Virus record (IMG/VR): IMGVR_UViG_3300017917_002466
Coordinates: 189,665-253,664 of that record
Direction: 5' to 3' (one strand)
DNA: 64,000 nt
The translations under genes and the position numbers were made by a program. Under the pieces are notes generated by a model. The model was not told where the DNA came from. It ran no database searches and saw nothing but the letters and a program-made list of their open reading frames with translations. The first letter of the stretch is position 1. Each line of letters opens with the position of its first letter. Shown one piece after another: positions 30,411-64,000 of the stretch.

Positions 30411-30412
30411 TA

Positions 30413-32593: not shown

Positions 32594-32595
32594 TT

Positions 32596-34011: not shown

Positions 34012-34136
34012 TTTTTAACTCCTCTTATTAAAATTAAATCCACCGAAAACAAATTACTTTTATAATACCATTTATTCATTAATTTATTATATTCAATTTA
34101 TTGTTCATCGCAAAATATTTTTATATTCTTAAATTT

Positions 34137-37237: not shown

Positions 37238-37239
37238 TT

Positions 37240-37437
37240 TTATTTTCTCCAATAACTATATATATTTTATCAATTTCATACTTCACAAATTTTTGTTCTC
37301 GTCTTGGTTGTTTCGTGGCTCAATTAAACATTTCATAAACTACTTTCTCAATATCAGTTTTATCTTTCAAATATCAAGTAAGTATCTTGAAAAGTTATTT
37401 TTATTAAATCAGCAACACCAGTAATAAATATATTCAT
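37240..37437 (-). pseudogene. internally deleted NAD-dependent sugar epimerase/dehydratase relic
   Basis: MNIFITGVADLI/NFSRYLLD Rossmann start joined to DKTDIEKVVYEMFN*ATKQPRR...YEIDK/IYSYWRK C-terminus, with frameshifts and a stop. Confidence 0.7.
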
Positions 37438-38096: not shown

Positions 38097-38101
38097 AATT
38101 A

Positions 38102-49591: not shown

Positions 49592-49777
49592 TTAACCATC
49601 AATTTCTTCAGTTCCTTCTCTGTCTAAAGAACAATCTCCAACTAATTTATTTTCAGTGTTGCTAAAGTCCAATTCACTTGGTTCTTCTTCAACTTTCTGT
49701 TCTAACCCATAAAACTCTTCAAAATCCTCAAAGTCTTCAAAGTCATTCTCATCACAATAGTATTTATCTTTAACCAT
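49592..49777 (-). CDS. small acidic hypothetical protein
   Basis: AAGGAG SD; overlaps the regA stop. Confidence 0.65.
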   Translation of the reverse strand: MVKDKYYCDENDFEDFEDFEEFYGLEQKVEEEPSELDFSNTENKLVGDCSLDREGTEEIDG

Positions 49778-50198
49778 TTGAAGACTCCTTACTTGTATTT
49801 ATAGAATTTATACTTCTAAAATTGAACTTATGACTAACTTTCCAATCTTGTTTCTGATTATAAGGAAGAACAAATACAAATTTATTATGTGGTTCTATTC
49901 TTTCATTCGCAACTTCTATTAAACCCCACGATTTTAAACAAAAAGCAATTGCATTTCTTCTAAGTATATCATCCTCACAAATAGCATTATAAGCAAAATC
50001 TCTTGTTAAAAGAAACATCTGTTTAAAATGAACTAAATATTTTTTATTATCTTGGTCATAAAGATAACAAGAAGGATACAAAATCTTCTTTTTCTTATTA
50101 GCGATACCAATACGATTAAGTGTTTCTTTAATAACTTTATCGTCAACTAAAACTTTTATTTCCAATAAGTCCTTTTCAATTTCCATATTTTCCTCCAA
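49770..50198 (-). CDS. regA: T4 RegA-like translational repressor
   Basis: KETL.RIGIAN...K.LY.SC.L.....Y.VHFK.MF, D..RRN.IA..L..WGLI, K..W...K. Confidence 0.92.
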   Translation of the reverse strand: MEENMEIEKDLLEIKVLVDDKVIKETLNRIGIANKKKKILYPSCYLYDQDNKKYLVHFKQMFLLTRDFAYNAICEDDILRRNAIAFCLKSWGLIEVANERIEPHNKFVFVLPYNQKQDWKVSHKFNFRSINSINTSKESSNG

Positions 50199-50224: not shown

Positions 50225-51925
50225 TTATTTATAAGAAACACCTTTCATTCTTTCAATAATAGGATTTAATGTTGTAGCAAAATAAAAACAATCGCCAAAT
50301 ATACCAAAACCAATAATATCACTATTTCTTTCAAGCAAAATACTATATCCATCAAAAGGATCAAAAGTATTAATATTTAATACGCTAATATATGTTCCAT
50401 TAGAATAATAAGTATTAATAGGATATAATAATAACAAATTTTTATAATGTGTCATACTATAACACGAATAAAAATTAGAATTAAACTTTAAAACATCAAC
50501 TGACCTTATAGATTCTACATTAAAGTTTTTAGTATCAATTCTATTAATAATACCATTATATACTTTCGTAAATGAATCGAAAATTTTATGATCAGAAGGA
50601 CTCATATAAATATATCTACCATCAAAAGTAGCACCATAACAAGGACTAAAAGAACTCACCGATGGACATTTAATAGCATCAATATAACTAAAATCTGAAC
50701 ATCTAATTCTCGGAATATATATAGCTGATAATGATTCTGGTTGAGGAAAGAAAATATTATCTGCTAATGGTATCATATAAACATATTTACCATCAGTAAT
50801 AACATTACCAAATGATTTCATATCTGGATTTATAGATTTTAAATCTAAAAATGTAGCTGATCCTGTAAAATTATTTTTATCAATTCTAGCAACTAATCCA
50901 TTATCCATTTCAAATAAAGAATTATAATTTGGTGCTAAATAAATATATCTATTATCTTGTGTCATTGAATTATATCCAACTGCTGATATATTATCAGATT
51001 GAAGGTCTTTAACTACCATTGAAGCTGAATTTCCAAACATAGTTAAATCTATTCTAGCAACTTTACCATATACTAATGGATTAATGTTATCAAATTGTAT
51101 TAATACATAAAGATATTTACCATCACTTAACATATCAATAACATAAGTTAATGTTGGGTCTATATCAGTTAAACTCATTATAGTACAACCAGATATTGTA
51201 AAATTATTAGGGTCTATCCTAACAATAGAATTTTGTTCTCCTGTATTTAAAAAAGCATCATAATATATGTATCTTCCATCTGATGCCATCGCAATAGAAG
51301 CAAAAAATGTAGGTAATATTGCGCTTAAATTAAGTTCTACTGGTTTTCCAAAAGGTATTAATTCTTGTGGTATTGTTGATTTTTGACCTATATCTCCATT
51401 ATAAGTATATCCAGTAATCTTAAATGGTTTAGAAAAGAAAGCCGTACTTCCGCCAAATATTAAAATACCAGTTTGATAATTAAATAGCCAATTACAAGGA
51501 TCAGTGGGAAATATTTCATTATTATCAGCATCATATAAATGAATAGTATAATCTAAACCATACTTATCACTTATCCAATTTTTAATTCTAGTTCCACCTT
51601 CAAAAGCAAAATAACATTGTTGGTTTGCAACAGAAGTATCTTCTGTTAATGCAAATAATACTCTTTGTGATGCTTTACCTGCGCTTACAGCAATATTAGA
51701 ATTAGAATTAATACTATCTACCCAAACTTCATCTAAAGTTGTATTAATAGTAAAATCACCAAATTCTTCGTAAAACATTTTTGAAGATGTTGTTACTCTT
51801 TTATTAATTAATTCTTTAAAAGATAAATCTTCTTGAGTCCACATAATAGGGTCCGATAAAAGTGAAATACCTGAATTATTACCACCATTAGTATATAATG
51901 ACGCATATATATTTATGTTATTCAT
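50225..51925 (-). CDS. virion structural protein with beta-propeller-like repeats
   Basis: W.FNYQ.GIL.F...P..ITGY.Y.G module; repeated DGRYIY/DGKYVY...RID...F units. Confidence 0.65.
   Translation of the reverse strand: MNNINIYASLYTNGGNNSGISLLSDPIMWTQEDLSFKELINKRVTTSSKMFYEEFGDFTINTTLDEVWVDSINSNSNIAVSAGKASQRVLFALTEDTSVANQQCYFAFEGGTRIKNWISDKYGLDYTIHLYDADNNEIFPTDPCNWLFNYQTGILIFGGSTAFFSKPFKITGYTYNGDIGQKSTIPQELIPFGKPVELNLSAILPTFFASIAMASDGRYIYYDAFLNTGEQNSIVRIDPNNFTISGCTIMSLTDIDPTLTYVIDMLSDGKYLYVLIQFDNINPLVYGKVARIDLTMFGNSASMVVKDLQSDNISAVGYNSMTQDNRYIYLAPNYNSLFEMDNGLVARIDKNNFTGSATFLDLKSINPDMKSFGNVITDGKYVYMIPLADNIFFPQPESLSAIYIPRIRCSDFSYIDAIKCPSVSSFSPCYGATFDGRYIYMSPSDHKIFDSFTKVYNGIINRIDTKNFNVESIRSVDVLKFNSNFYSCYSMTHYKNLLLLYPINTYYSNGTYISVLNINTFDPFDGYSILLERNSDIIGFGIFGDCFYFATTLNPIIERMKGVSYK
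50226..50233 (-). promoter_or_regulatory. T4-type late promoter
   Basis: TATAAATA upstream of regA. Confidence 0.6.
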
Positions 51926-51927
51926 AT

Positions 51928-54012
51928 TTAGCTTGCATTATTTAAACCAGTTAATTTAATTTTACCCATAGTAATATCAACTTGTGGTGCGAAATTAAAT
52001 CTACTTCCTATTGTTTTAGGTTTCCATTCCAGATTAGAAGTAGTATTACCAATATCACCTGGTTTAAACGATGGTAATATCCATTTAGAATTATTTAAAG
52101 TTTCCCAAGTTATAATTTGACCAGGAGTTTTTGCTTGTAAATTTGCTATTTGATCTTGTGTTATAGAAATTTCTGAATTTGATCCTTCTAAAATAATTTT
52201 AGTATACTCAAAACCAAAAGGATTATAACCAAAATAACCTTTTATTATATTTAAATTATTTTTAATTTTAAGATTATTCGGTTGTAAATTACTTAAAAAT
52301 CCTAATGATGCATTACTTATTAAAGTATTTGATGTCATATTAACTGTTAAACTTTTAATTGAAGCTAAATCTAATTCAGTCATTCCATAACCATTATTAA
52401 TAGTAATTTTAACATAAGAATCTTTATTATCTTGTGATTCAAAATATATATCGTATGGATAATAATTCATATTACTAACTGTCAATGATAAATTCTGATA
52501 TGGAAAAGTATCTTCTATTGGTACATATGATAACATTCTAATAGTTTGTAAATTTGGTGCATTTAAAGTAAAAATAGCATCGTTTCTATATGATCCAATA
52601 ATAAAATCTTTATTTAAAATTCTTATTTCTGTTGCACTTATATTTACTGTTAAATTTTCATTAGAAAGTATATTTATTGAATCAAAAGTTATAATATTTT
52701 CAGAAAATAAATCTATTGTTGAACTTATTGATGGAAGTGCTATTGTTGGATAATATTGTATTCCAACTCCTGATATATTTCCTAAAAATCTCCATTTAGT
52801 ACCAGTTGCACTAATTTCATCTGGAATAATATTAATTATATTAGATGTTGATTCACCTATATTTTTTGTTTTTGCCAATATTATTTCTGAAAAATCAAAA
52901 GTTATATTATTAGAAATATTATATGGTATTATATTAAATTGCAAAAATCCATAAAAATTAAAACCTGAATATGCTGAAATTATATATCCTGATTCTTTAG
53001 GATAAATTGAAAAAACTTTTTCTTCTCCAAAAATACCTGAACTTGGGAATCCTTCTTTAATAATTAAAGATTTCATATTAACATTATTATTAATAGTACA
53101 ATGACCAATACCATTTTCATTAAATTCAATATCATTTGTACTATCAGGAATAATACCCAAAGACCAATTTAAAGAATTATTCCATAAACCAGATGTATTT
53201 GCTATCCAATAATTTTTAGGTCCAAATTGAAGAGTTCCATTTACTGGATGTGTATATCCTTTTAATCCACCAAGATCAGCGCTTAATGTATAAATATTAT
53301 AAACTTCTTCATCTGATAATACTCGATTATAAATTATTATATTATAAGTATCAATAGATTGATTATTATTAGTAGTTTGGAAAAAATTTCCAATTGAAAT
53401 ATCTGATAAAATAGCGTCATTAAATGGTATTGTATTTATAGGAGTGGAATATATTGTTGATTTATTACTAATGCCATCAATATAAAATTTATATTCTCCA
53501 ATAGAATTTCTTATAACTGTAATTGCGTGAATTCCTAATGGAATTCTGCCTTCCAATGTATAATCAATATATACGTTTTCTTGATATATTTCAAATGGTT
53601 CCCAATTTCCTACTAATATAATTAAATTAACATTTTTTTGACCTTGAGTAATTATAAATTGTAATGACCCAAAATCATAATTTCCAAATGGAAGAAAATT
53701 ACCAGCATTTAAAATATAAAACTCAGCTGTATTAGTAATATTAACTATACTATGAATTGTAAAACCATCATTGCCCCAAATAATTTTACCATTTGTTTGT
53801 AAATATTTTGCTATAATTGTATCAGTTTGGGACGTTAAAAGAATACCATTATCATAAACTAAGTTATTAACCATCGTTCCACTTATATTAGCACTAGGAC
53901 TATAAATTGGAAAAGTAGTTCCTGAAAATGGTGGTGGATTTTGACCATTCTTCAAACATTCCGGAAGAATAGCAAAATTACAACCAGAAGCATTCCAATT
54001 ACCTATAAACAT
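51928..54012 (-). CDS. virion structural protein with LamG/ConA-like domain
   Basis: H...VR....KFYIDG, IG, IYNRVLS.EEV..IY; W....NWS...P....I.F motif. Confidence 0.7.
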   Translation of the reverse strand: MFIGNWNASGCNFAILPECLKNGQNPPPFSGTTFPIYSPSANISGTMVNNLVYDNGILLTSQTDTIIAKYLQTNGKIIWGNDGFTIHSIVNITNTAEFYILNAGNFLPFGNYDFGSLQFIITQGQKNVNLIILVGNWEPFEIYQENVYIDYTLEGRIPLGIHAITVIRNSIGEYKFYIDGISNKSTIYSTPINTIPFNDAILSDISIGNFFQTTNNNQSIDTYNIIIYNRVLSDEEVYNIYTLSADLGGLKGYTHPVNGTLQFGPKNYWIANTSGLWNNSLNWSLGIIPDSTNDIEFNENGIGHCTINNNVNMKSLIIKEGFPSSGIFGEEKVFSIYPKESGYIISAYSGFNFYGFLQFNIIPYNISNNITFDFSEIILAKTKNIGESTSNIINIIPDEISATGTKWRFLGNISGVGIQYYPTIALPSISSTIDLFSENIITFDSINILSNENLTVNISATEIRILNKDFIIGSYRNDAIFTLNAPNLQTIRMLSYVPIEDTFPYQNLSLTVSNMNYYPYDIYFESQDNKDSYVKITINNGYGMTELDLASIKSLTVNMTSNTLISNASLGFLSNLQPNNLKIKNNLNIIKGYFGYNPFGFEYTKIILEGSNSEISITQDQIANLQAKTPGQIITWETLNNSKWILPSFKPGDIGNTTSNLEWKPKTIGSRFNFAPQVDITMGKIKLTGLNNAS

Positions 54013-54025
54013 TTTTATCTCCTAA

Positions 54026-54271
54026 TCAAATTTCTAGTTTATTTAAAATATTCATTAATATTGGAATAAATGCTATAAAAGGTATTGGTAAAAATTTAAA
54101 CAGAATTTTTTCATCACCAACTTTAGTTAATATTATTATATTATTCGTTAAATCTAATTTATAATTTTCTTTATTAATTTTTCCTTTAAAAATTATTTCT
54201 GTATCACTTGAACTAACTATTTCATATTCTTTCTTTCTAAAAAATTCTATAATCATTGAAGAATTAATCAT
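54026..54271 (-). CDS. hypothetical protein
   Basis: GGAGG SD; tiled. Confidence 0.55.
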   Translation of the reverse strand: MINSSMIIEFFRKKEYEIVSSSDTEIIFKGKINKENYKLDLTNNIIILTKVGDEKILFKFLPIPFIAFIPILMNILNKLEI

Positions 54272-54281
54272 AACCCCTCCT

Positions 54282-56675
54282 TTATAAACCTACTATTAAC
54301 ATTTGTGATGCTTTAGCTATACTATTATTTAATAATGTTACTCTAATAAAAACTATTCCATTTGAATTTGAAGATGTAAATGTTCCAAATGAAAGGTTAA
54401 AAATATTTCCAGACGAAGAACCTAATTTACAACCATTACCATCTCCAAATGATTTACCACAATCTAACCAACCAGATTCATTAGGTAATCTTATTTCTAT
54501 ATTTAAATTTCCTGTTCCAACAGGAGATACGTCTGAAACTGTAACACCTGTAAAAGTTATTCTCATACTAGAATGAGCCATTCCAATATTGGAAGCCCAT
54601 ACACCGACTTGATTTCCTGTAAATCCAGAATAATTAACTGATTGTAATGGTAAATATCCACTAGAATAATTAATTGAAGGATAATCCCAAACGCTATTAA
54701 ATAATACTAAATTTCCATTTGTTAATGGAAGATTACTATTCCAGTTTCCTGTTATAGAAATAGGAATTATTGAAAAATCTGCTGATAATGGAAATCTATA
54801 ATTTTCATCAAACATTGTAATATTTCCATTAGTACTATTAAATGGTGAATATGTATTAACTAATCTATTTTCAGAAATAGATTGTGATGTTGCTGTTATT
54901 CCATTTGGTTTTTTTGCTGTAATTATAATTCTATCATTAATTGAATATGCACTTAATACATTAAGAGCAACTGATAAATCATTTAAAGTATAAACTCCAT
55001 TGTAAGCAAAAGAACTACCAGATATCGCTTTATTAACATTATTTAAACCTTCCATAATATAAGAAATGGGATCAATTGGTCTAATTGCTCTATTTGCTAT
55101 ATTTGTTACTTGTGCACTAATATCAAATGTATCACCTAAATAATAATATCTAATACCAGAAAGGTATCTTGAACTTGATATTACATTTTGAACAATTGTT
55201 GCAATTGTAGAAAATGATGGAGTTGAATTAACATTATCATATCTAACAGCAATATCTCCTGTTTGTAATATTGTAGCACCATCAATATATTTCATAGAAT
55301 GCTTTTTAAATCCTTCTGTTGATTGAACCGCATTAATACGTGCATTTGCTTTTTGCCATATAGAGTTATATGTTGTAAGGGATGTAATTTGAAGCTGACC
55401 TGTAACTCCTACTCCGGCTGAAATAGCTCTACTTTCATTATTAATTCCATCTTCTATATGAATTAATGTTCCTCTTGCTGTTTCAAAAGCAGTACCAACC
55501 ATAAAAGCAGAAGTTATATTTGGTGTTTCCATTATTGATGTATTAGAAACCATATAATCAGTTATTGTATTTCCGGCTATACTTCCATCAGCATACCAAG
55601 CTGAAGTTAATCCTGTTGGAAGAATAGCGCTATATTTTGTTCCTGTAAAATTAAGAGTTCCTCCGAACGCTAATGGTGCTGCCGGAGATATAGCATTTAT
55701 AATAGTTTGAAGTTGACTTATTTCATTCTCTGTAATTATATCTTGGGCGCTTAATGCTGATATTTCTGATTGAAGAAAATTATCCATAGCACTTAATGCG
55801 CTTAATTCAATATTAACAGCGCTTGAACTTCCACCACTTATAACTATATTTTGAATAGCGGCACTTAATTGATTAATTTCATTTTGTAAATTTATATCAT
55901 TAGCACTAACTTGAACAATTAAATTATCAACATATCTTTTATTAGCTGCATCAGTTGGATTAACTGGATTAGCTAAATTAATAATTCTAAAATTACCAAT
56001 ACTTAAATTAGCAATCATCGGAATGCTACCATCTGATAAAATAGCATTTGATGTTCTATTAACAACTACGCCTGGAACTGTTACTACAGGTGATTCTCCA
56101 CCAGTAGAACATTCATTATTTGTTGATAAAAGTTTAGATTCAAATAATATTTCTTCATAACTAAAATTACATAAAAATGTAATTTCATCACTAATACCTT
56201 GATTTAATGAAATAGGACCAAGACTTAAAAGAAAAGCTTCTGAAAATCTCCAAAAAGCTATTGGTCTTTTTTTATTATCAAGAATACTTAAATTAATAGA
56301 TTTAATTGTATATTTACGAAAAAATTCTTCTTCTTTATTAAAATTTTCTACTTTTCCATATTTTAAAGATTGCATCCAATTAAATAAATTGGAATAATTC
56401 TTCATATCTTCTGAAAGTTTAAATTCTATTGAAATTTGAGAAAGATCAGTATTTGCTTTAATACCACCAACAGGATGTCTGATACGAAATCCCATTGTAT
56501 CAGAGTATATTTCATTCATTGTATATTCTGGAAAACTAACACTTTTAACAAAATTATCATAAATTCTCATATCACGAATAGATTCTAATGTTGGTAAATT
56601 AGAAAAACTTACTTGCCAACGATCACTATGAAAAAGATTCGGATAGACATTAGATGGTAAAACTATTTTATTCAT
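54282..56675 (-). CDS. T4 gp19/gp54-like tail-tube (initiator) domain fused to a long fibre-like extension
   Basis: N-terminal PN....V.FP...L.IEF...EDM.NY..L..WM...L.ILD.....F..AF..SLG......F...FSY; then RI.NL.NP...TDAANK.YVD fibre motif and coiled coil. Confidence 0.72.
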   Translation of the reverse strand: MNKIVLPSNVYPNLFHSDRWQVSFSNLPTLESIRDMRIYDNFVKSVSFPEYTMNEIYSDTMGFRIRHPVGGIKANTDLSQISIEFKLSEDMKNYSNLFNWMQSLKYGKVENFNKEEEFFRKYTIKSINLSILDNKKRPIAFWRFSEAFLLSLGPISLNQGISDEITFLCNFSYEEILFESKLLSTNNECSTGGESPVVTVPGVVVNRTSNAILSDGSIPMIANLSIGNFRIINLANPVNPTDAANKRYVDNLIVQVSANDINLQNEINQLSAAIQNIVISGGSSSAVNIELSALSAMDNFLQSEISALSAQDIITENEISQLQTIINAISPAAPLAFGGTLNFTGTKYSAILPTGLTSAWYADGSIAGNTITDYMVSNTSIMETPNITSAFMVGTAFETARGTLIHIEDGINNESRAISAGVGVTGQLQITSLTTYNSIWQKANARINAVQSTEGFKKHSMKYIDGATILQTGDIAVRYDNVNSTPSFSTIATIVQNVISSSRYLSGIRYYYLGDTFDISAQVTNIANRAIRPIDPISYIMEGLNNVNKAISGSSFAYNGVYTLNDLSVALNVLSAYSINDRIIITAKKPNGITATSQSISENRLVNTYSPFNSTNGNITMFDENYRFPLSADFSIIPISITGNWNSNLPLTNGNLVLFNSVWDYPSINYSSGYLPLQSVNYSGFTGNQVGVWASNIGMAHSSMRITFTGVTVSDVSPVGTGNLNIEIRLPNESGWLDCGKSFGDGNGCKLGSSSGNIFNLSFGTFTSSNSNGIVFIRVTLLNNSIAKASQMLIVGL

Positions 56676-56728
56676 TTAAACTCCAATCTAAAATACCATA
56701 GAATTTATGAAAAGCAATACTATATTCT

Positions 56729-57235
56729 TTAAAGTATATTTTCAATTTCTTCATCTGTTTCTTTAACTAAAATACGAAGAATATCAAAATTAAAATCATT
56801 TGGAAGAGCCTCAAATTTACACTGTACAATATCTACTTCGACTTCTTGTTCCAAAATTTCATTAAAAATATTAATTTCTTTAGAACGTTCTTCAAGAACA
56901 TTCGCATATTCTTTTGCCAACTGATTAACTTCTTCTTGACACTTTTGTTTTTCTTCATCTGACTTAAATTCTCCGTTAATTATATAATTGTTTATAATTA
57001 TTTGTTTTCTTTCTTCAAACTCCTTAAACTTTGGTAATCCTGATTCTCTTGCTTTTAAAATATCAGAAGCAATTGGTTGAAGATATGTAAGAGTTCTACT
57101 AATAGCAAAATTAAATCTTTTATCAAACTTCTCTAAATCAGGATATTTATTCCTTAAAAGATATACAATATTAAATATTTTTTCATTAGTTAACCGAGTT
57201 TTCATAAACAAAACCTCCTTATTGTTCACACTCAT
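56729..57235 (-). CDS. helical hypothetical protein (possible tail-fibre assembly chaperone)
   Basis: charged helical protein directly after a fibre gene; GAGG SD. Confidence 0.6.
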   Translation of the reverse strand: MSVNNKEVLFMKTRLTNEKIFNIVYLLRNKYPDLEKFDKRFNFAISRTLTYLQPIASDILKARESGLPKFKEFEERKQIIINNYIINGEFKSDEEKQKCQEEVNQLAKEYANVLEERSKEINIFNEILEQEVEVDIVQCKFEALPNDFNFDILRILVKETDEEIENIL

Positions 57236-60161
57236 AAATTATAGTATAATAAAAATTAGTTGGTAAATTATCTGATCCTTGTGCTATAAATGTAAATAAA
57301 CTATTATCATTTTCAAAAATCATTATATCAATATTTGATAATGATTTGCGTGTATTAATTGAATTAAACTGTATTATTGAATAACAGTTAAAATTAAATA
57401 AAGGATTATCTTGATTAAAATAAAGTTGTTCTGGTAAATTAACTGTAATAGAATGTACTACTTCATTTGTTAATACCATTCCGTGAACAATTGCAGTTTT
57501 TCCTACTTTAGTATATTTAAAAGGAGCAATATTTGTATTTCCAATTTGTAAAGATGGATTAAGAGTTAATTCTCTCAATGGACCACCAGTACCTCTAATA
57601 TTACTGTTAGGAAAATTAATTTGAAAAGTAATAATATCAACTTTAAAAGACCCTTCTATATATCCTCTAACTTTAACATAACCATTTTCTAAAGAAACTT
57701 CAAAATTTGATGGAAATTCTTCTCCGGTTCCATTTGATGTTGGATTTTGTAATATATTATTAACTTCTGATTTAATATTTGATAATAAATTTTCAATAGT
57801 AGTATTACTATTAATACTTACTGAAATATTTGATTTATTTAAAGATGTTATAGATGATCCGTGTGTAAGATATAAAATAAAAGAAAAAGTTAAATTACTT
57901 GTTGTAGTTCCTACTTGAGCATCTATATTACCTAAAAATAATTCAGAAAGAGTTCCATTACTATTAGTTTTATCTTGTATATAATTTTGGAGATCAGCAA
58001 TTAAAAAAGTTTGAGTAGTATTATTTAATGATCCATCCCATTCTCCAACTGCTACCGATCTCTTTCTCTCATAAAAACCTGAATTTGAAAATGTTGCCAT
58101 AGTAGCATATATGTTATGATAACTACGAATATTTTCCATAGCTATAATTTCACTATCGCTAACAATATTATCAGTTGCACTAATATTTTCTGCTAGAATT
58201 CTTTTTGAAAAAAGATTATTCCAACGAATATTTTGAGTTCCTAAATCACATATTTCATTTGATATTGGCTGTATTGTTGAATCAACATAAATTTTCTTAC
58301 TAATAAGAAATAATTTTGAATTATTATCTAATAAGTCTTGCATTGTTTCTATTGAATTAGCTTTTTCAATAATATCTGTAAATGCAATAACTTTTTTAAA
58401 TCCTGCTCCAACAACTAAATTAAAGTCTCCTGCATATCCAGAATCTTCTACTTTAGATATCAATAAAGCTGTATTATAAGTTGTTCCAATATTTCTTAAC
58501 TCAACAGGACCAAATAATCCGATTTTTCCTTTCGATCCAAGTATAAGCTCAGCAGAAGTTGAAAGATTAGTATTTTGGCTATTAAATAAACCAGGAGACT
58601 TCCTTTCAATTTCATAAACAATATTTTTATGAGTTGCTCCAGTTTGACCAGCTAATGAAGCATATGAAGCTGAAGTATCAAGACCAGCAAAAATGTAAAT
58701 ATTTTCTACATTATATTCTTTACCAAGATTTTTATAATAAGTATTATATATAAGAAGATTTTGTTTTTCTCTCCATAAATCTCCTCCTTTAAAAGCACCG
58801 ATCAAATAAGAAGATTGAATTTCGGAAAAATCAATTATATCAATTCCTCTTAATTGTAAGGTAATTCCAAAAGGGTCTTTTTCTGGTGGAACCGAAGTTC
58901 CTCGAACTCCTCCTATTGTAATACTACCATAATTAACACTAATAGCATGATTATACCAACTAATTACATTAAGTGGAATTATATTCGTTGTATCTTTTGA
59001 TCCTGTATGTGATCCATTTTCAAGATATAATTCTCTAAAACGGTACTCATCTGTTCCAAGAGCAATTGATTGAGTTATTTTTGGACGAATAGATATAGCA
59101 TCTCCACAATATGTATTCCAATTTGCAACATTAAGAATAATATCTGCTCCAATTTTTCCATCAGTACTTTCAGTAACATCATATTGATTTGGACTAATAT
59201 CAATACTATCAAATCTATTATTATCGTAATCCATTCTAAGAATTGGAATACCTGTATCCAAATCTTGTCTAGCATATCTAAGATGCATTGCTGCACTTAT
59301 TTCACTAGTATTTCCATCAAATTGTCCAACTCCAATTCTATTTGGAAAGTATAATCCACCCGGAGAATGTGACCAATAATCAGCAGAAGATGAGAAAAAT
59401 ATTTCTTCCCACGTTGCATCTACTCCACTAATATCTAATTGAATATCAAATTCAAATTGACTATATCCAGTTTCTGTTCTTGAAATTTGTGCTGGAAAAG
59501 CTGATAAATAAGCTTCTCCAAAAAAGACTGAGGTTCCTAATGATGGCGGAGCCTCTGAAGCAAATAAAGCTATCTTATTAAACTTAAAAGAACCTTTACT
59601 ATTATCAATAATACATTTTATTGAACCTCTAAGTTGAGTTAAACTTGGTCCTTCATAAACTGGGTAATAATCACCAGCAGACCAATATTCTGAATATGTT
59701 GAAGGAGAATCTTCAAGAGGAGTAACTCCAGAAACAACTTGAGCATTAGTAGCCGACCAATTAAATAATCCACCACCAACATTTATTGAAGTCCATTCTG
59801 AAGCACTAATTTGATCTGAAAGTGGTTGGTTATTTAAAAGGTTTACAGGAACAGTTGATTTTTGATAAGAATTATATAAAGTATTTGGACTCCATAGACC
59901 AGCACTTGTAATATAACTTTCAGTATTATCAATAGAATATCCATTTTTTCTCCAAATTACTTCACCATATGGTACTAGTCTATGAATACCATCTTCAGCA
60001 ACTTGTTGAACAGAAGACAAAGTACTTGATTCAGTTCTAATATATGGGTCTATTCTATCATCATAAACTGGTACAAAATACTTCAAGTAAATGAAGATAC
60101 CTTCATCCTTTGCATACTTAACGAAATTCAATCCACCCTGTGTTAGCATTACATTTGGCAT
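57219..60161 (-). CDS. tail fibre/baseplate protein
   Basis: LT..G start and F.FN.IALF collar-like domain, DLG....RW..LF repeats, C-terminal YTKVGK...V.G...LP receptor-binding-like domain. Confidence 0.7.
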   Translation of the reverse strand: MPNVMLTQGGLNFVKYAKDEGIFIYLKYFVPVYDDRIDPYIRTESSTLSSVQQVAEDGIHRLVPYGEVIWRKNGYSIDNTESYITSAGLWSPNTLYNSYQKSTVPVNLLNNQPLSDQISASEWTSINVGGGLFNWSATNAQVVSGVTPLEDSPSTYSEYWSAGDYYPVYEGPSLTQLRGSIKCIIDNSKGSFKFNKIALFASEAPPSLGTSVFFGEAYLSAFPAQISRTETGYSQFEFDIQLDISGVDATWEEIFFSSSADYWSHSPGGLYFPNRIGVGQFDGNTSEISAAMHLRYARQDLDTGIPILRMDYDNNRFDSIDISPNQYDVTESTDGKIGADIILNVANWNTYCGDAISIRPKITQSIALGTDEYRFRELYLENGSHTGSKDTTNIIPLNVISWYNHAISVNYGSITIGGVRGTSVPPEKDPFGITLQLRGIDIIDFSEIQSSYLIGAFKGGDLWREKQNLLIYNTYYKNLGKEYNVENIYIFAGLDTSASYASLAGQTGATHKNIVYEIERKSPGLFNSQNTNLSTSAELILGSKGKIGLFGPVELRNIGTTYNTALLISKVEDSGYAGDFNLVVGAGFKKVIAFTDIIEKANSIETMQDLLDNNSKLFLISKKIYVDSTIQPISNEICDLGTQNIRWNNLFSKRILAENISATDNIVSDSEIIAMENIRSYHNIYATMATFSNSGFYERKRSVAVGEWDGSLNNTTQTFLIADLQNYIQDKTNSNGTLSELFLGNIDAQVGTTTSNLTFSFILYLTHGSSITSLNKSNISVSINSNTTIENLLSNIKSEVNNILQNPTSNGTGEEFPSNFEVSLENGYVKVRGYIEGSFKVDIITFQINFPNSNIRGTGGPLRELTLNPSLQIGNTNIAPFKYTKVGKTAIVHGMVLTNEVVHSITVNLPEQLYFNQDNPLFNFNCYSIIQFNSINTRKSLSNIDIMIFENDNSLFTFIAQGSDNLPTNFYYTIIYECEQ

Positions 60162-60199
60162 ATTTCTTTATACTCCTTAAAAACTCCTTATCTTTCAAT

Positions 60200-60207
60200 T
60201 ATTTATA
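60200..60207 (-). promoter_or_regulatory. T4-type late promoter
   Basis: TATAAATA in intergenic gap; AAGGAG SD downstream. Confidence 0.7.
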
Positions 60208-60229
60208 TTTCTTATAGAGTATCAACTAA

Positions 60230-61894
60230 TTATTCTGGATAAATATAACCATTCCAATCATTAGAGTATCCATTTGAATCAATTTTAATATAAACTGAAG
60301 ACCTTACCCAACAAGCGACTTCAAGCTCGAAAACTCTCTTTACATATCCTGCTAGCTTTCTAAATACTGTATTTATCGGTCTTATTGATTCAATTGCATT
60401 AACTACACTATTTCTTCTATTTTGTTGAGAAATATCTTGGCTTTTATCAAAATCAATATAAACAGCAAAATGTGGAGTTGGAAACCAATTATTTGGAATT
60501 TCTGATAAGTCTTTATTAAAATCAGCCCTCCAATTTTTACTATCTTCACTATAATCTGATGAAAAATATTCAATAATTTCACCAACTAAACCAAAAGAGT
60601 ATAACATTACTTTAATAGAATTCCTTGTAGTTTTAATTTTATACCAAGATGGAAGATTTTCTACAACAAATCTTAAATATTTATTAATATCTGAAGCTGA
60701 ACAATTAGAATCTATTTCAGTAGTTCCAAATTCTCCTGATTGAATACCTTCTGCGCTAACTCCAACTTCATCTCTTGAAACAGATACGTTATATCCAAGA
60801 TTAGATGCAAAGAACTGGATATATTCTATATCTATAAGACTTGGGTCATGTAATTCTGTCAATCTTGCTACTTTTTCAAGAATAGATATTTTTTGGGCTG
60901 AAGTAAAATAGTTTATATTAGACGGTTCAATTAATTGCATCTGTTCTACATTAGTAGCATCTGTTCTTGCACTAACATCAGTTGCTGAATAAATGAAATC
61001 CTGTTGTGCGGTTGCGGAAGAAGTTCCTGAATTTGAAACATAGAATGAACTTCTTGTTGTTAACTCAGTTGAACTTATTTCCCAACCACAAAGACCATTA
61101 TACATATTATTCAAAAATTCTTCAAAGAGTATTAAGAATTCCTCTGTTTCTCCGCCTCTTAGGTACAGAGGTAGGTATTCTCGTAGGTTGATGTTTTTAC
61201 AACTACCATATCTACCAACAATATCAGGGCCGCAGATAGTAATATAATCTTCTTTAGTTTGACAACAAGAACTTTCAATAATAGAAATAGAAGTTGTACT
61301 TATTCCAATATTACCGCTTATATCAAAAGCTGATACAGAAACTGTATAATTTCCTTTTGTTGAATATGTATGTTCAAATGTTGCTGTTGTATCTACTGTT
61401 GAAGAAGTATTACCATCTCCAAAATCCCATACAATATTAGTAATAGTTCCATCAAAATAAAGACTTCCGTGTTCGTCTGAAAAAATAATTACCGAACTTA
61501 CTGATGGTGAGCCATTTATCCAAATTTCTGGTAATGGATTAACATAAACTGGTTTTCCAGTAGCTACAGAAGTTATAAGAATATCACCTTGTGAATTAGT
61601 TACATTCGCATAAACTCCCCATAAATAATTCCCTTTATACCCAAAACTATGTTGTGCTGATGTTGATGAAGTAACAACTCTAGAATGATCGGTAAATGAA
61701 AAATAATAAGAAACCGTCCAGTCACTTCCCAATCCATTAGCAGAAGAAATAGCTGAAAAGGTAAAATTATTACCTACAAAATCTAATGTTTTATTAACAG
61801 TGGCAGAAAGAATATTAAAAGAAATATTATTATCAAACCAAAAGGCTCCTATTCCTTCTCTACTTTCTCCCCAAAGTCCAGTATTATATGTCAT
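60230..61894 (-). CDS. baseplate wedge protein (gp7/P2 gpI-like) with PKD domain
   Basis: WDFGDG..HTY...GNYTV; LP.YL, DP..ID.EY...A..LGY, YK.K.T...I...L..FG, IE..RP.NT. Confidence 0.75.
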   Translation of the reverse strand: MTYNTGLWGESREGIGAFWFDNNISFNILSATVNKTLDFVGNNFTFSAISSANGLGSDWTVSYYFSFTDHSRVVTSSTSAQHSFGYKGNYLWGVYANVTNSQGDILITSVATGKPVYVNPLPEIWINGSPSVSSVIIFSDEHGSLYFDGTITNIVWDFGDGNTSSTVDTTATFEHTYSTKGNYTVSVSAFDISGNIGISTTSISIIESSCCQTKEDYITICGPDIVGRYGSCKNINLREYLPLYLRGGETEEFLILFEEFLNNMYNGLCGWEISSTELTTRSSFYVSNSGTSSATAQQDFIYSATDVSARTDATNVEQMQLIEPSNINYFTSAQKISILEKVARLTELHDPSLIDIEYIQFFASNLGYNVSVSRDEVGVSAEGIQSGEFGTTEIDSNCSASDINKYLRFVVENLPSWYKIKTTRNSIKVMLYSFGLVGEIIEYFSSDYSEDSKNWRADFNKDLSEIPNNWFPTPHFAVYIDFDKSQDISQQNRRNSVVNAIESIRPINTVFRKLAGYVKRVFELEVACWVRSSVYIKIDSNGYSNDWNGYIYPE

Positions 61895-61906
61895 TTAAAT
61901 TCTCCC

Positions 61907-63427
61907 TTAAATCAACTTCAACTTAGCACAACATTTAACAGAATATTTTTGACCACGATATCCTGTATAAACGTGTGATATAGTATTAATAGTTGAAGTT
62001 TCAAAAGGAATATTACAAACATTATTAACATAGTCATAATCAAAACACCATTCATAAGTATCTACTTTATACTTTGATATTAATTCTGGGGAAAGATTAA
62101 TTGTTGCAGTAAAATCGACTACAAGTGGTGAAGAACCAATTCTTGGAACGCCCACAAAATTAACATTAATCTCTTGAGTTGAATAAACAGTAGGCTGAAG
62201 TAAATTAAAAAGTACTGAAAGATAAGGTGGACTTACAACAGTATTTTCAGTATTTATAATTATTACATTAGGTGGTAAAAGAATAGCTGAAATTTCTATT
62301 ATAGGAGCTTCGACAGTTTCATCTACTGGTCCAAAATAAAAGGCTCCAATATGTCCAACATTAACGCCAATAAAATCATTTTTAGATATTATGGAATTAA
62401 TTGGTTCATTTCCATAACCAATTCCACTAGTAGCAGAAAGTATTACTGAATATAATCCATTATTTAAATAAGTATGGGTTGGATTAGCACACGTTGAAAA
62501 TGATCCATCACCAAAATCCCAAAGATAAGTAGATGCTCCAGTTGAAAGATTTGTAAATTGGACATTAAGATTATTTGATCCGAATAATGGAGATGCACTA
62601 AAATCAGCTTGTGGATCAACAGCAGTAACTGTCTTACTTGCTATAGAATTATTCAATGGGCCATATGCAGAAAGAGTTATTGTATAAACTCCTGGAGTAT
62701 CATATCCAAAAGAAAACGAACTAGTTTTATGACAACTATTATCAATTAATCGGCCATCTCCAAAATCCCACTTACAAGCTGATTCATTTTGTGAAAGATT
62801 ATCAATATAAAATCCTGCGCTTGTAATAGAATCGAAATAATTAGGACCAATTCTTGTACATAAAGGCCAACCATAAGTATCATATGGTAGTAAATTAAAA
62901 TTAGCTAATGTTAAAATAACAGATACTGTTTTAATTTTTATACTTTGTGTAGTTGCTCCATTAGCTGATAATCTAACATTAAAACTTCCGCTTCCAGAAA
63001 ATATATGAATTGGATTAGTAGTACTTGAAGTATACCCATCTCCAAAATCCCAATTATATGTCAATGCATTAGTACTTGAATTACTAAATTGATATGTTGT
63101 TCCTGAAATTAAAGTATATCCAAAATCTGCACAAACAGATATTGCACTAATATAATTACTTCTTGTAGTAAGTCCTGAAGTTAATCCACTTATCGCAGTT
63201 AAACTAACAGTATAAATTCCAGAAGATTCATAAATGTGGGTTGGGTTAGCACTCGTTGAATAACTTAAATCTCCAAAATCCCAATAATAAGCTGAAGCTC
63301 CACTTGATAAATTAGTAAAAGTAATTAAAAGTGGCGTCTCACCAGATGTTGGAGTTGCACTAAAGAATGCTGATAAACCAGTTCCTTTATAATCTCCTAA
63401 TCCATATGTTAAACTTCCATAGGCCAT
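61907..63427 (-). CDS. multi-PKD-domain virion protein
   Basis: four WDFGD..ST..NP.H.Y...G.Y.V.L PKD repeats plus a degenerate fifth. Confidence 0.88.
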   Translation of the reverse strand: MAYGSLTYGLGDYKGTGLSAFFSATPTSGETPLLITFTNLSSGASAYYWDFGDLSYSTSANPTHIYESSGIYTVSLTAISGLTSGLTTRSNYISAISVCADFGYTLISGTTYQFSNSSTNALTYNWDFGDGYTSSTTNPIHIFSGSGSFNVRLSANGATTQSIKIKTVSVILTLANFNLLPYDTYGWPLCTRIGPNYFDSITSAGFYIDNLSQNESACKWDFGDGRLIDNSCHKTSSFSFGYDTPGVYTITLSAYGPLNNSIASKTVTAVDPQADFSASPLFGSNNLNVQFTNLSTGASTYLWDFGDGSFSTCANPTHTYLNNGLYSVILSATSGIGYGNEPINSIISKNDFIGVNVGHIGAFYFGPVDETVEAPIIEISAILLPPNVIIINTENTVVSPPYLSVLFNLLQPTVYSTQEINVNFVGVPRIGSSPLVVDFTATINLSPELISKYKVDTYEWCFDYDYVNNVCNIPFETSTINTISHVYTGYRGQKYSVKCCAKLKLI

Positions 63428-63491
63428 TATTAATATTTCCTAAAATTTAAAAAAATAAATTTATATTCTAATTTAAGGCATATTATTTTAT

Positions 63492-64000
63492 TTAAGGTAG
63501 TTCCCACCATCCATCAAAAGTAACTATTTTTGTACCACTTGTAGTCCAAAAAGTAGAACCTGTTGCGTCGTAATAAAAAGTTATTAAATAATCAGGAGCA
63601 TGTATAACATAACGGGCTCTTCCCACCTTCGTAGCTCCTTCACTTGTTCCAATAAAGGGATAATCGCCTCGTATATTAATATTTGATGATGATAGAGATG
63701 GGGGAATATGAACATGAGCATTAACAGAACTATTAGACGTACCACTTATATAAAGTCTATAAAGTACTATTTTTCCAATTCTTTTATATGCAGCACTTAT
63801 ATCAACTGCACTAGATACCCATCCAGATGCACTTACACTTGAAACAGGTTGTACTGTCCATTTAGTTGTAAATATATCATTACCAGCTGATATATCTGTT
63901 CCAGCTGTTATACTTGTACCCGCACTTATAGTAGTTGCACTTAAACTACTGGATTTAATACTTGTACCCGCATTAATACTTGTACCCGCACTTATAGTAG
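63492..64000 (-). CDS. C-terminal part of a tail fibre protein (5'-partial, not in ORF track)
   Basis: open frame TISAGTSINAGTS...YKRIGKIV...GWWELP*; SAGTSI repeats. Confidence 0.8.
   Translation of the reverse strand, partial: TISAGTSINAGTSIKSSSLSATTISAGTSITAGTDISAGNDIFTTKWTVQPVSSVSASGWVSSAVDISAAYKRIGKIVLYRLYISGTSNSSVNAHVHIPPSLSSSNINIRGDYPFIGTSEGATKVGRARYVIHAPDYLITFYYDATGSTFWTTSGTKIVTFDGWWELP

Follow-up and report, generated by a model that had tools for sequence, protein, structure and literature searches.

In mycobacteriophages, virion proteins are glycosylated by phage-encoded glycosyltransferases (GTs), with sites that cluster in C-terminal extensions of the capsid and tail tube subunits (Freeman et al. 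2023, as cited in PMC12619734); to our knowledge, no sequence motif has been reported there. The general O-glycosylation system of Bacteroidota recognizes the three-residue motif D-(S/T)-(L/I/V/T/A/S/M), whose enrichment is visible in sequence statistics. It acts only on non-cytoplasmic proteins, by transfer from a lipid carrier in the periplasm, and its glycans are commonly methylated and built by GT loci that include fucosyltransferase-family enzymes (PMC12871550). Human peptide O-xylosyltransferase 1 (XT1), a eukaryotic Golgi GT14 enzyme with a Xylo_C domain, requires Ser (Thr gives 7% activity) and also Gly or Ala at +1 because of a constriction in its cleft, tolerates uncharged residues (even large ones) at -1, favours acidic flanks and binds the peptide in extended form, with many sites per core protein (PMC5992326). 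Finally, soluble GTs of the HMW1C, Aah/TibC, GtfA/B (acting on serine-rich repeat proteins) and Maf systems decorate large fibrous bacterial surface proteins, such as adhesins and flagellins, at many Ser or Asn sites in the cytoplasm before export or assembly, and use N-x-S/T, alternating S-x repeats or no defined motif.

Here, we analyzed a window of 64,000 nucleotides from the IMG/VR record IMGVR_UViG_3300017917_002466 (positions 189,665 to 253,664), which belongs to an uncultured group of giant T4-like phages. The first-pass annotation of this window had claimed that the dipeptide Ser-Ala (SA), usually in the context [ILVTFS]-S-A, pervades all tail and baseplate proteins, that it is not a DNA repeat and matches neither the Bacteroidota D-(S/T)-x nor the N-x-S/T sequon, and that selection has placed it on exposed virion proteins as an acceptor site for a 22-kb glycan island in the same window, giving a self-encoded glycan shield. 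The observation held, and was in fact stronger than first described. Its interpretation, however, was only partly supported, as detailed below.

Similarly to the mycobacteriophage system, the phage studied here carries its own GT genes, which would place glycans on its own structural proteins in the cytoplasm, and sites cluster in the C-terminal tail of gp15 of relatives and in an extension fused to a tube-fold protein. It differs in that a sharp tripeptide is inferred, in that the putative targets are fibres, outer baseplate and neck rather than the capsid shell or the true tube, and in the far larger enzyme island (about 22 kb); in contrast to the mycobacteriophage case, glycosylation is here a hypothesis. 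With the Bacteroidota system it shares a three-residue motif whose enrichment is visible in sequence statistics, with Ala possible after the acceptor, and a GT locus that includes fucosyltransferase-family enzymes. However, that motif requires Asp at -1, which is strongly depleted here, and accepts Thr, which this one does not; moreover, no membrane machinery was detected in the island and virions assemble in the cytoplasm. The logic of the XT1 rule is nearly identical to that inferred here, and one relative has a sulfotransferase inside its fibre module, but no Xylo_C domain was detected and charged residues are at background in the flanks and depleted at -1, so that the resemblance is one of mechanism only. 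Regarding the adhesin and flagellin systems, one relative's island carries an MptE-like (Maf-type) protein and a CMP-sugar synthetase. Nevertheless, N-x-S/T is not enriched here, alternating S-x repeats would make SA equal to the reversed dipeptide AS, and none of the signature enzyme families of those systems was detected in the window.

The tail module of the window, together with its synteny anchor, comprises the following features, where L-numbers denote loci of related phages, Phi stands for Thr, Leu, Val, Ile or Phe, and counts are given as observed against expected:

63492..64000 (-), 3' part of a fibre gene, cut by the end of the source contig at window position 64000 (168 codons plus stop), with hexad-like repeats such as TISAGTSINAGT; Phi-S-[AG] 8 against 1.8.
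61907..63427 (-), 506-aa protein with four PKD domains (PKD_4, E 1.2e-40, 4 stretches), the densest motif carrier in the window; Phi-S-[AG] 16 against 3.3, z 7.5.
60230..61894 (-), 554-aa fibre-like or outer baseplate protein with one PKD domain (PKD_4, E 3.4e-12); Phi-S-[AG] 8 against 2.8.
57219..60161 (-), 980-aa clade-conserved baseplate-module protein with conserved N-terminal two thirds and a variable C-terminus, without Pfam, PHROG or GenBank phage match and with a poor AF2 model (pLDDT 42).
56729..57235 (-), 168-aa conserved small protein between the 980-aa gene and the tube-fold gene, 40% identical to L003 12694..13215; SA 0.
56106..56675 (-), tube-fold domain (residues 1-190) of ORF 54282..56675 (phrog_45 tail tube, E 7.8e-15), 68% identical to the 180-aa stand-alone orthologue in L003; a paralogue of the tail tube and not the main tube, since the relative has a separate tube gene next to its sheath gene; motif count 0.
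54282..56105 (-), 607-residue C-terminal extension fused to the tube-fold domain only in this phage (orthologues in relatives end at about 180 aa), including the coiled-coil-like repeats ELSALSAMD and EISALSAQD; Phi-S-[AG] 15 against 4.3, z 5.5.
50225..54012 (-), two ORFs (566 and 694 aa) between the tube-fold gene and regA, without family match and mildly enriched (Phi-S-[AG] 5 against 2.0 and 8 against 2.6); no ORF of that size occupies this position in the three relatives examined, where the ~180-190-aa tube-fold gene is followed directly by regA (a 34-aa ORF intervenes in L005).
49770..50198 (-), RegA-type translational repressor (Translat_reg, E 1.4e-22), 57-87% identical in all related loci, a synteny anchor that marks the phage as T4-like.

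Firstly, we recounted SA and AS in the five minus-strand ORFs 54282..56675, 57219..60161, 60230..61894, 61907..63427 and the partial ORF 63495..63998, and obtained SA/AS values of 14/2, 10/4, 11/2, 12/4 and 7/1, exactly as annotated. In 54282..56675, the first SA is at residue 257, so that all 14 lie in the extension. To correct for composition, a control that had been named beforehand as a possible refutation, residues were shuffled within each protein. SA was found 54 times against 20.0 +/- 4.0 expected (z 8.4), ranking first of 262 dipeptides (the next best had z 3.4), while AS was 13 against 19.9. By contrast, the other 57 ORFs of the window gave SA 36 against 39.0. One third of all Ala residues in the five proteins follow a Ser.

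Since the dipeptide had been chosen after inspection of the sequence, we also asked whether the signal could be an artefact or a nucleotide-level effect, such as a DNA or RNA motif, codon-pair bias, S/A-rich low-complexity patches or the selection of one dipeptide out of 400. AGY Ser codons are somewhat over-used in SA (26 of 54, against 117 of 365 overall). However, 15 different codon pairs from both Ser codon families are used, and the DNA pattern (TCN|AGY)GCN was enriched only in the coding frame (54 against 20.1), not in other frames or on the other strand. Further, AS, SS and AA are not raised, which excludes S/A-rich patches, and the signal was replicated in independent genomes at z 19-29 and holds from 25% to 42% GC. 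These results refute such an origin, which we consider practically excluded. Neither do repeats account for the sites, as 46 independent contexts remained after merging those with similar flanks, against 19.9 +/- 4.1 in shuffles.

The whole excess lies in the tripeptide [TLVIF]-S-A, with 42 sites against 7.1 (z 13.4) in the window and 139 against 18.3 (z 29) in 13 fibre proteins of relatives, whereas [^TLVIF]SA was at expectation (12 against 12.8). Ser at -1, included in the initial definition, is not part of the motif. Thr does not replace the acceptor Ser, as Phi-T-A was at expectation (7 against 4.8 and 15 against 14.3). In line with the first-pass annotation, neither the Bacteroidota D-(S/T)-x motif (6 against 10.6) nor N-x-S/T (48 against 50) was matched. 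Across 532 sites, specificity was confined to positions -1, 0 and +1, with no flanking periodicity. The motif does not pervade all tail proteins: the tube-fold domain and the 81-aa and 168-aa ORFs have none, and ORFs 50225..51925 and 51928..54012 are only mildly enriched (SA 6 and 5 against 2.4 and 2.0) and show no SA/AS asymmetry (6/5 and 5/4).

Next, we monitored the motif in other phages. It was present in about 10 related uncultured phages (25-42% GC) and in about 65-85 gp15 cluster representatives. In the gp15 family, motif O/E was 4.5-5.4 for the 65 nearest cluster representatives and 1.4-2.2 for distant ones, while T4 gp15 has none. Structural proteins of T4, HTVC008M and S-SSM7 showed no significant SA or Phi-S-A excess, although Phi-S-A was borderline in S-SSM7 (21 against 13.9, z 2.0). 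In 16 homologues of the 980-aa protein, pooled SA was 177 against 88.6, with AS 73; about 8 [ILV]-S-A columns are conserved, next to many lineage-specific ones. SA sites are shared between homologues no more than ordinary Ser residues are (Jaccard 0.15 against 0.21 at 35-50% identity), even though the fibre-module ORFs of every lineage examined stay enriched (about 3-fold pooled). Ser within SA is somewhat more conserved than other Ser (44% against 32%).

These comparisons bear on the possibility that there is no modification, and that Phi-S-A (and Phi-S-G) is a lineage-specific structural habit of beta-rich appendage proteins, consisting of a hydrophobic residue, an outward-pointing Ser and a small residue at strand ends, spread by domain shuffling within the clade. 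In favour of this, about 100 of 187 SA sites in the 980-aa family lie in the conserved columns and could be structural, motifs such as W-D-x-S-A-Y-G-P-W recur in several fibre proteins, and position -1 is typical of beta strands. In addition, Phi-S-G is enriched in the giant baseplate proteins of HTVC008M (45 against 22.3) and S-SSM7 (41 against 21.6), so the Gly variant may partly be a turn motif. However, 46 of 54 sites have unrelated contexts, their positions turn over between homologues, and no amphipathic periodicity surrounds them. The motif also occurs independently of fold, in PKD domains, coiled-coil-like segments, fibre repeats and a globular 243-aa protein, and forms a dense T-S-A/G array in the low-confidence, possibly disordered C-terminal tail (pLDDT 41-68) of a well-modelled gp15 terminator. 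Moreover, Thr, the usual structural stand-in for Ser, is not enriched and TA is depleted, and homologous folds outside the clade (T4 gp15 and the T4, HTVC008M and S-SSM7 fibre and baseplate sets) lack the motif. We therefore regard a purely structural origin as unlikely.

To determine which virion parts carry the motif, we counted Phi-S-[AG] in the proteins of the L003 phage. Strong enrichment was observed in fibres (z 7-12), gp15 (10 against 1.2), a 243-aa baseplate protein (10 against 0.9) and a 362-aa protein (11 against 1.5), and mild enrichment in the sheath, gp13 and the major capsid protein. Zero sites were found in the portal, protease, scaffold, tube, tube paralogue, gp25 and three further inner proteins (0 against 7.3 pooled), which include beta-rich ones such as the tube; this, too, speaks against a purely structural habit of beta-rich proteins. 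The VanY hub (2 against 2.5), the gp5-like spike (1 against 0.5) and terminase (1 against 1.0) were not enriched, and the gp6-like wedge lacks the SA signal (SA 3 against 5.2) but is borderline on the wider motif (7 against 3.5). Hence, in this relative the motif marks parts taken to be outward-facing and is absent from internal ones. The major capsid protein of a relative, although surface-exposed, was hardly enriched (SA 4 against 3.0; wider motif 5 against 1.8), and the signal is concentrated on appendages, namely fibres, outer baseplate, neck and terminator. A glycan shield over the whole virion is therefore not supported.

We then examined the candidate enzymes, and confirmed by Pfam searches that the annotated island is indeed one of glycan enzymes, with at least 9 GT-domain proteins:

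18497..40334 (-), 21.8-kb island with GT2 x4, GT11 x2, a GT17+methyltransferase fusion, a GT2+GT1 fusion, a compact GT-B, DUF5672, DUF3431, 2 B12-radical SAM, 1 radical SAM, several methyltransferases, a hexapeptide acyltransferase, a cupin and a HAD phosphatase.
39528..40334 (-), compact (268 aa) soluble GT-B-type glycosyltransferase, first and best-conserved gene of the island and candidate initiating enzyme, with 46-71% identical orthologues at the same position in five other phages.
38800..39531 (-), GT2 glycosyltransferase (Glycos_transf_2, E 9.6e-22), conserved partner directly next to the compact GT-B, with 48-54% identical orthologues in L007, L008, L012 and L028.
22781..23542 (-), GT11 (fucosyltransferase family) enzyme (Glyco_transf_11, E 1e-27), third conserved member of the GT core, with 52-58% identical orthologues in L007, L008 and L028.

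The GT-B, GT2 and GT11 core is syntenic in six phages, and motif and GT core co-occur in every relative that could be examined. No relative lacking the GTs was found for a contrast, so that this co-occurrence within one clade is not an independent test and may count as a single evolutionary event. The compact GT-B had no Pfam hit; an atlas placed it with viral GT1/GT4-like clusters (TM 0.8-0.9 to GT4 models), an assignment that rests on language-model and predicted-fold similarity only, and no island protein matches a known protein O-glycosyltransferase family. The island could also serve another substrate, such as host envelope glycans or DNA. A crude hydropathy scan found no island ORF with more than two hydrophobic segments, and thus no polytopic flippase, polymerase or oligosaccharyltransferase was detected, which fits stepwise cytoplasmic transfer.

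Taken together, the best reading, which we hold to be about as likely as not, is that Phi-S-A (relatives also use Phi-S-G) is a short linear acceptor motif for phage-encoded O-glycosylation, kept by selection at high density on the outward-facing appendage proteins of an uncultured clade of T4-like jumbo phages. In this view, a soluble, Ser-specific protein O-glycosyltransferase, for which the compact GT-B with its GT2 neighbour is the best candidate, would act in the cytoplasm before or during tail assembly. Its peptide cleft would take an extended chain with an uncharged residue before the Ser and only Ala or Gly after it, and the variable remainder of the island (GT11, GT2 and GT17 transferases, O- and C-methyltransferases and an acyltransferase) would extend and decorate the first sugar. 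The result would be fibres, outer baseplate and neck carrying roughly 8-16 glycans per protein in this phage, and up to about 30 in relatives. While the motif, its specificity, its distribution among proteins and phages and the enzyme genes were established by our analysis, it is an inference from statistics and gene neighbourhood alone that the motif is modified at all, that the modification is a glycan, and which enzyme initiates it.

Alternatively, the motif could be a recognition signal for another Ser modification (phosphorylation, acylation or a radical-SAM-dependent change) or for a fibre chaperone or assembly factor, the island then serving a different substrate such as host surface polysaccharide or phage DNA. 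All the evidence for a short linear motif under selection applies equally here, phage GTs act on DNA and on host serotype antigens (reviewed in PMC12619734), and the window also encodes, besides the three radical SAM enzymes of the island, a lysine-aminomutase-like one and P-loop kinase-like proteins. Nonetheless, this seems unlikely, since no protein kinase, acyl-carrier or RiPP-type recognition domain was detected, no flippase, polymerase or ligase for a lipid-linked surface glycan was detected in the island by the crude hydropathy scan, and the radical SAM and B12 enzymes, unlike the GT core, were not found in those parts of the relatives' islands that were retrieved. Furthermore, glyco-enzymes sit inside the fibre modules of relatives themselves, with a GT2/Anp1-like protein plus a sulfotransferase in L004, Methyltransf_24 in L020 and an Anp1-like protein in L021, and a methyltransferase and a cupin lie next to the motif-rich 362-aa gene in L025.

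The window, which forms the last 64 kb of the 253,664-bp IMG/VR contig IMGVR_UViG_3300017917_002466, is AT-rich (24-40% GC) and almost entirely coded on the minus strand. Besides an NAD-dependent ligase and a CCA-adding enzyme, it carries the following features relevant to this analysis:

18497..40334: 21.8-kb block (island) of glycan enzymes
39528..40334: first gene of the island, a compact 268-aa protein placed with GT-B enzymes
49770..50198: T4-type regA
50225 to the contig end: tail and fibre module
50225..54012 (minus strand): two large ORFs (566 and 694 aa) with no family match
54026..54271 (minus strand): 81-aa ORF with one strongly hydrophobic segment (residues 54-76), lying between the tube-fold gene and the two large ORFs
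54282..56675 (minus strand): tube-fold protein, of which 54282..56105 is a motif-rich extension
57219..60161: 980-aa protein
60230..61894: further motif carrier
61907..63427: PKD protein
63492..64000: partial fibre gene

No GenBank phage matched the region, either at the nucleotide level or by tblastn with the tube-fold or 980-aa proteins, and no cultured relative was found. However, a syntenic 264-kb relative (covered by loci L003, L011, L024 and L025) carries gp13, gp15, terminase, sheath, tube, T4-type portal, prohead protease, scaffold, gp23-type capsid, gp25 and a gp6-like wedge, the latter being only about 24% identical to those of cyanophages and pelagiphage. Together with regA in the window, these T4-type core genes indicate that the phage belongs to a distant, uncultured T4-like jumbo lineage. 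The 253.7-kb contig, several conserved glycosyltransferases (GTs) and the low GC are compatible with the 'moraphages', a described lineage of 200-307 kb aquatic phages with four core GT orthogroups (PMC12619734).

Firstly, we re-examined the excess of Ser-Ala (SA) over the reversed dipeptide (AS) that had been proposed in a first-pass annotation. The counts were reproduced exactly, with SA/AS values of 14/2, 10/4, 11/2, 12/4 and 7/1 in 54282..56675, 57219..60161, 60230..61894, 61907..63427 and the partial fibre, respectively, and the observation is thus confirmed and, as described below, considerably extended. Shuffling within each protein gave 54 SA against 20.0 expected (z 8.4), the highest of 262 dipeptides, the runner-up having a z of 3.4, while AS was slightly low (13 against 19.9). 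In contrast, the 57 other ORFs of the window had 36 SA against 39.0. One third of all Ala residues in the five proteins follow a Ser.

We next considered whether the signal could be an artefact, a possibility which is effectively excluded by the following tests. A DNA or RNA motif or a codon-pair effect was rejected, since the pattern (TCN or AGY)GCN was enriched only in the coding frame (54 against 20.1), with the other frames and the opposite strand at expectation, 15 codon pairs from both Ser codon families were used, and the signal held from 25 to 42% GC. Internal repeats or domain duplication were rejected as the main cause, as 46 independent contexts remained of the 54 sites after merging those with similar flanks, against 19.9 +/- 4.1 in shuffles. 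Likewise, S/A-rich patches cannot account for it, since AS, SS and AA were not raised.

The excess was found to lie entirely in a tripeptide, Phi-S-A (Phi being Thr, Leu, Val, Ile or Phe), as shown by the pattern counts in the five window proteins and in 13 fibre proteins of relatives.

Observed against expected counts of tripeptide patterns (window, five proteins; relatives, 13 fibre proteins)
[TLVIF]-S-A: window 42 against 7.1 (z 13.4); relatives 139 against 18.3 (z 29)
[other]-S-A: window 12 against 12.8; relatives 44 against 36.3
[TLVIF]-T-A: window 7 against 4.8; relatives 15 against 14.3
[TLVIF]-S-G: window 14 against 9.7; relatives 86 against 27.0 (z 12.4)
[TLVIF]-S-[not A/G]: window 112 against 112.7; relatives 196 against 277.4 (z -6.3)
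D-[ST]-[AILVMT]: window 6 against 10.6; relatives 33 against 40.4
N-x-S/T (x not Pro): window 48 against 50.0; relatives 103 against 116.6

Neither the motif of Bacteroidota general O-glycosylation nor the N-x-S/T acceptor site of HMW1C-type cytoplasmic N-glycosylation was therefore enriched. Further, Asp directly before the Ser, which the Bacteroidota system needs, occurred at only 0.19 times background (3 of 248 sites). Across 37 motif-rich proteins and 532 sites, information was confined to positions -1, 0 and +1. At -1, charged residues were at 0.03 against a background of 0.16 and G/P/D/N at 0.08 against 0.26, whereas every other position was at background and no amphipathic periodicity was detected. 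This is the signature of a short linear motif, not of an extended structural element.

To determine how widely the motif is spread, we analyzed related sequences. The 16 database homologues of the 980-aa protein gave a pooled SA count of 177 against 88.6, with 73 AS. Loci from about ten distinct uncultured phages were examined, in which identity to the 980-aa protein goes down to 26-30% and GC ranges from 25 to 42%. In all of them the large ORFs upstream of that gene had SA z-scores of 3 to 9.5, while their regA, replication and tube-fold genes showed no such enrichment. For the gp15 tail terminators, we scored the 150 best representatives of 50%-identity clusters, and the observed/expected ratio of the motif was 4.5-5.4 for ranks 1-65, 3.3 for ranks 66-85 and 1.4-2.2 beyond. 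T4 gp15 has no site.

This was in contrast with the outgroups, which were negative for both SA and Phi-S-A, so that a generic property of myovirus fibres was rejected for these two patterns. T4 gave 57 SA against 68.7 (21 structural proteins) and 23 Phi-S-A against 22.9 (24 structural proteins), HTVC008M (locus L022) gave 60 against 55.7 and 18 against 22.0, and S-SSM7 (locus L023) gave 38 against 35.3 and 21 against 13.9, the last value being not significant (z 2.0). However, Phi-S-G was raised in the giant baseplate and fibre proteins of the two marine T4-like phages, HTVC008M (45 against 22.3) and S-SSM7 (41 against 21.6), with Phi-T-G also raised in the latter. The Gly form may therefore partly be an ordinary turn motif, and what is clade-specific is the Ala form together with the exclusion of Thr.

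In order to establish which proteins carry the motif, we walked along the 264-kb relative and counted Phi-S-[AG] per protein (observed against expected). Enrichment was strong in five fibre-like ORFs (z 7-12), the 891-aa orthologue of the 980-aa protein (13 against 4.5), a 243-aa protein next to gp25 (10 against 0.9), gp15 (10 against 1.2) and a 362-aa protein near the portal (11 against 1.5). It was mild in the sheath (6 against 2.1), gp13 (3 against 0.5) and the major capsid protein (5 against 1.8; SA alone 4 against 3.0). Terminase (1 against 1.0), the VanY hub (2 against 2.5) and the gp5-like spike (1 against 0.5) were at expectation, and the gp6-like wedge was borderline (7 against 3.5, z 2.0), although its SA count was not raised (3 against 5.2). 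Ten internal virion proteins, namely the portal, prohead protease, scaffold, true tube, tube-fold paralogue, gp25, a gp51-like protein and three inner proteins of 357, 418 and 174 aa, had no site at all (0 against 7.3 pooled). This could mean selection against stray modification, although the test is post hoc and covers one genome.

Non-virion ORFs of the window were also at expectation (21 against 17.6 pooled). In the window itself the carriers are 54282..56105, 57219..60161, 60230..61894, 61907..63427 and 63492..64000, while the ORFs of 50225..54012 carry the motif weakly. The motif therefore marks outward-facing appendages, rather than all tail and baseplate proteins, as the first-pass annotation had claimed, or the whole virion surface.

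The N-terminal 180 residues of 54282..56675 are 68% identical to a stand-alone 180-aa protein in relatives, which also have a separate tube gene next to the sheath gene. The window ORF is therefore a tube-fold paralogue, perhaps a tube initiator or cap that now carries a fibre, which has acquired a 607-residue, motif-rich, fibre-like extension in this phage only. The two ORFs of 50225..54012 sit between this gene and regA. No ORF of that size occupies this position in the three relatives examined, where the tube-fold gene is followed directly by regA, and they look like a lineage-specific insertion of extra appendage genes.

We also analyzed the evolutionary behaviour of the sites. In pairwise alignments of homologous appendage proteins at 35-50% identity, SA sites were shared with a Jaccard index of 0.15, against 0.21 for Ser in general; even so, the fibre-module ORFs of every lineage stayed enriched, about threefold when pooled. 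Ser within SA was somewhat more conserved than other Ser (44% against 32%), with an ordinary replacement spectrum. The 980-aa family is an exception, since about 100 of its 187 SA sites sit in about 8 conserved columns. Inheritance of conserved positions thus explains much of the excess in this family, but not in the fibres, where sites turn over. The AlphaFold model of the 980-aa protein was too poor to use (pLDDT 42).

In gp15 of this clade (for example 2057..3013, plus strand, in locus L024, and the cluster representatives P0017-P0100), the sites crowd into the last 75 residues or so as an array of 5-10 T-S-A/T-S-G units with variable spacing. T4 gp15 and distant homologues lack this tail, the region being mostly gaps in the latter. 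The gp15 core was modelled by AlphaFold with confidence (pLDDT 80-97) and matched T4 gp15 (Foldseek E 8.5e-16), while the motif-bearing tail had a pLDDT of 41-68, with residues 276-299 modelled as coil. Positional turnover with maintained density, plus arrays in a low-confidence appended tail, point to selection on the motif itself. A clade-specific structural habit without any modification remains possible on the present evidence, but we consider it unlikely.

With regard to the enzymes, at least 9 GT-domain ORFs lie in 18497..40334. The island holds four GT2, two GT11, a GT17-methyltransferase fusion, a GT2-GT1 fusion, DUF5672, DUF3431, two B12-binding radical SAM proteins, one further radical SAM protein, several methyltransferases, a hexapeptide acyltransferase, a cupin and a HAD phosphatase. 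Its first gene (39528..40334), which had no Pfam hit, is the best conserved and is placed with compact viral GT1/GT4-like GT-B enzymes. This gene and the adjacent GT2 (38800..39531) recur at the same place in five other phages, and the GT11 (22781..23542) in three of them, whereas the rest of the island differs between phages. The island of one relative (locus L007, 19486..20555, plus strand) contains an MptE-like (DUF115, Maf-type) protein followed by a CMP-sugar synthetase-like gene, a pairing that occurs in flagellin nonulosonic-acid glycosylation. A crude hydropathy scan detected no polytopic membrane protein in the island, and so no flippase, polymerase or oligosaccharyltransferase of a lipid-linked pathway.

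In relatives, glyco-enzymes are embedded in the fibre modules. In a 253-kb relative (locus L004, 5971..7598, plus strand), a small GT2/Anp1-like protein and a sulfotransferase lie between motif-rich fibre genes, which hints at sulfated glycans on its fibres. Locus L020 has a Methyltransf_24 and locus L021, from a distant relative, an Anp1-like protein, while in L025 a methyltransferase and a cupin sit beside the motif-rich 362-aa gene. BLASTP revealed no homology among these small enzymes of the fibre modules, nor between them and window ORFs. An IS605 OrfB/TnpB (Cas12f-like) gene is also inserted within the fibre module of L021 (7473..8810, plus strand). No relative lacking the island was found, although the four most distant loci (L018-L021) end before the position where it would lie and a GT-based scan recovered only close relatives. 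Motif and GT core co-occur within one clade, so this may count as a single event.

Taken together, the best reading is a Ser-specific acceptor motif for a phage-encoded, cytoplasmic O-glycosylation of appendage proteins, which we regard as about as likely as not. The motif, its distribution among proteins and phages and the presence of the enzyme genes were established here from sequence, whereas that the serines are exposed, that they are modified, and that glycans are covalently attached to virion proteins by these enzymes is inferred, as nothing has been shown chemically. Another modification or a chaperone signal, with the island serving a different substrate, is a further possibility that we consider unlikely. 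The interpretation in the first-pass annotation is plausible and partly supported, but its claims of a motif in all tail and baseplate proteins and of a virion glycan shield are overstated.

The inferred acceptor logic closely parallels that of human xylosyltransferase 1, in which a constriction in the peptide cleft demands Gly or Ala after the Ser, Thr gives 7% activity, and uncharged residues are tolerated before the Ser (PMC5992326). In line with this rule, Phi-S-A and Phi-S-G are enriched, while Phi-T-A is not and Phi-S-[not A/G] is depleted, although this is a statistical inference about sites, not an enzyme assay. The resemblance is one of mechanism only, since no GT14 or Xylo_C domain was detected by Pfam among the island ORFs at E <= 1e-3, and the preference of that enzyme for acidic flanking residues was not observed, charged residues being at background at all flanking positions except -1, where they are depleted. 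The Bacteroidota system needs Asp at -1 and acts in the periplasm on non-cytoplasmic proteins after lipid-linked assembly and flipping (PMC12871550), whereas here Asp is rare at -1, no membrane machinery was detected in the island and the targets are virion proteins, which assemble in the cytoplasm. In the mycobacteriophage case, phage-encoded glycosylation reportedly targets the C-termini of the major capsid and tail tube subunits (Freeman et al., as cited in PMC12619734), while in the 264-kb relative the capsid protein is barely enriched, the true tube has no site, and the motif marks fibres, outer baseplate and the gp15 C-terminal tail.

A recent review states that bacterial O-glycosylation generally has no sequence motif, with the Bacteroidota system as the only known exception (PMC12871550), and the one studied case of phage self-glycosylation has, to our knowledge, no reported sequon. 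In a more far-reaching view, which remains tentative and slightly less likely than not, Phi-S-(A/G) would be the acceptor sequon of a previously unknown, phage-encoded, cytoplasmic, Ser-specific protein O-glycosylation system, turning the fibres, outer baseplate and neck of a large uncultured clade of jumbo phages into proteoglycan-like structures, with about 8-30 glycans per protein that are fucosylated and methylated and in some lineages sulfated. It would be the second sequence-defined O-glycosylation motif outside eukaryotes, after the Bacteroidota one, and phage glycoproteomes could then be predicted from sequence alone, including directly from metagenomes. A sharp, Ser-specific tripeptide, selected only on outward-facing virion parts and paired with a conserved set of soluble GTs, gives a falsifiable rule, in which the modification should disappear when the Ser, the Ala or the hydrophobic residue is changed, and the 268-aa GT-B is small enough for direct biochemistry. 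The finding would bear on how large environmental phages protect or tune their host-binding organelles and could provide a small tag-and-enzyme pair for glyco-engineering. Even without a glycan, a z of about 29 for one tripeptide, confined to a defined subset of virion proteins across a large clade, would still need an explanation.

A scan of the window revealed no tRNA genes. A radical SAM protein with a lysine-2,3-aminomutase C-terminal domain (14364..15548, minus strand; LAM_C E 3.2e-21) lies just outside the GT island, and a small protein with an ADP-ribosyltransferase domain of the 'polyvalent protein' type is encoded at 8402..8956 (minus strand; ART-PolyVal E 2.8e-7). The only clear plus-strand gene is an HNH homing endonuclease (16173..17093; phrog_559 E 7.9e-83), with a non-coding gap of about 0.6 kb on its upstream side (15549..16172) and a 3' end that overlaps the next minus-strand ORF (17073..17603). 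Finally, GC rises to 39.6% in 12001..14000, against about 28% around it, over an ORF of 508 aa with no family match (12629..14155).
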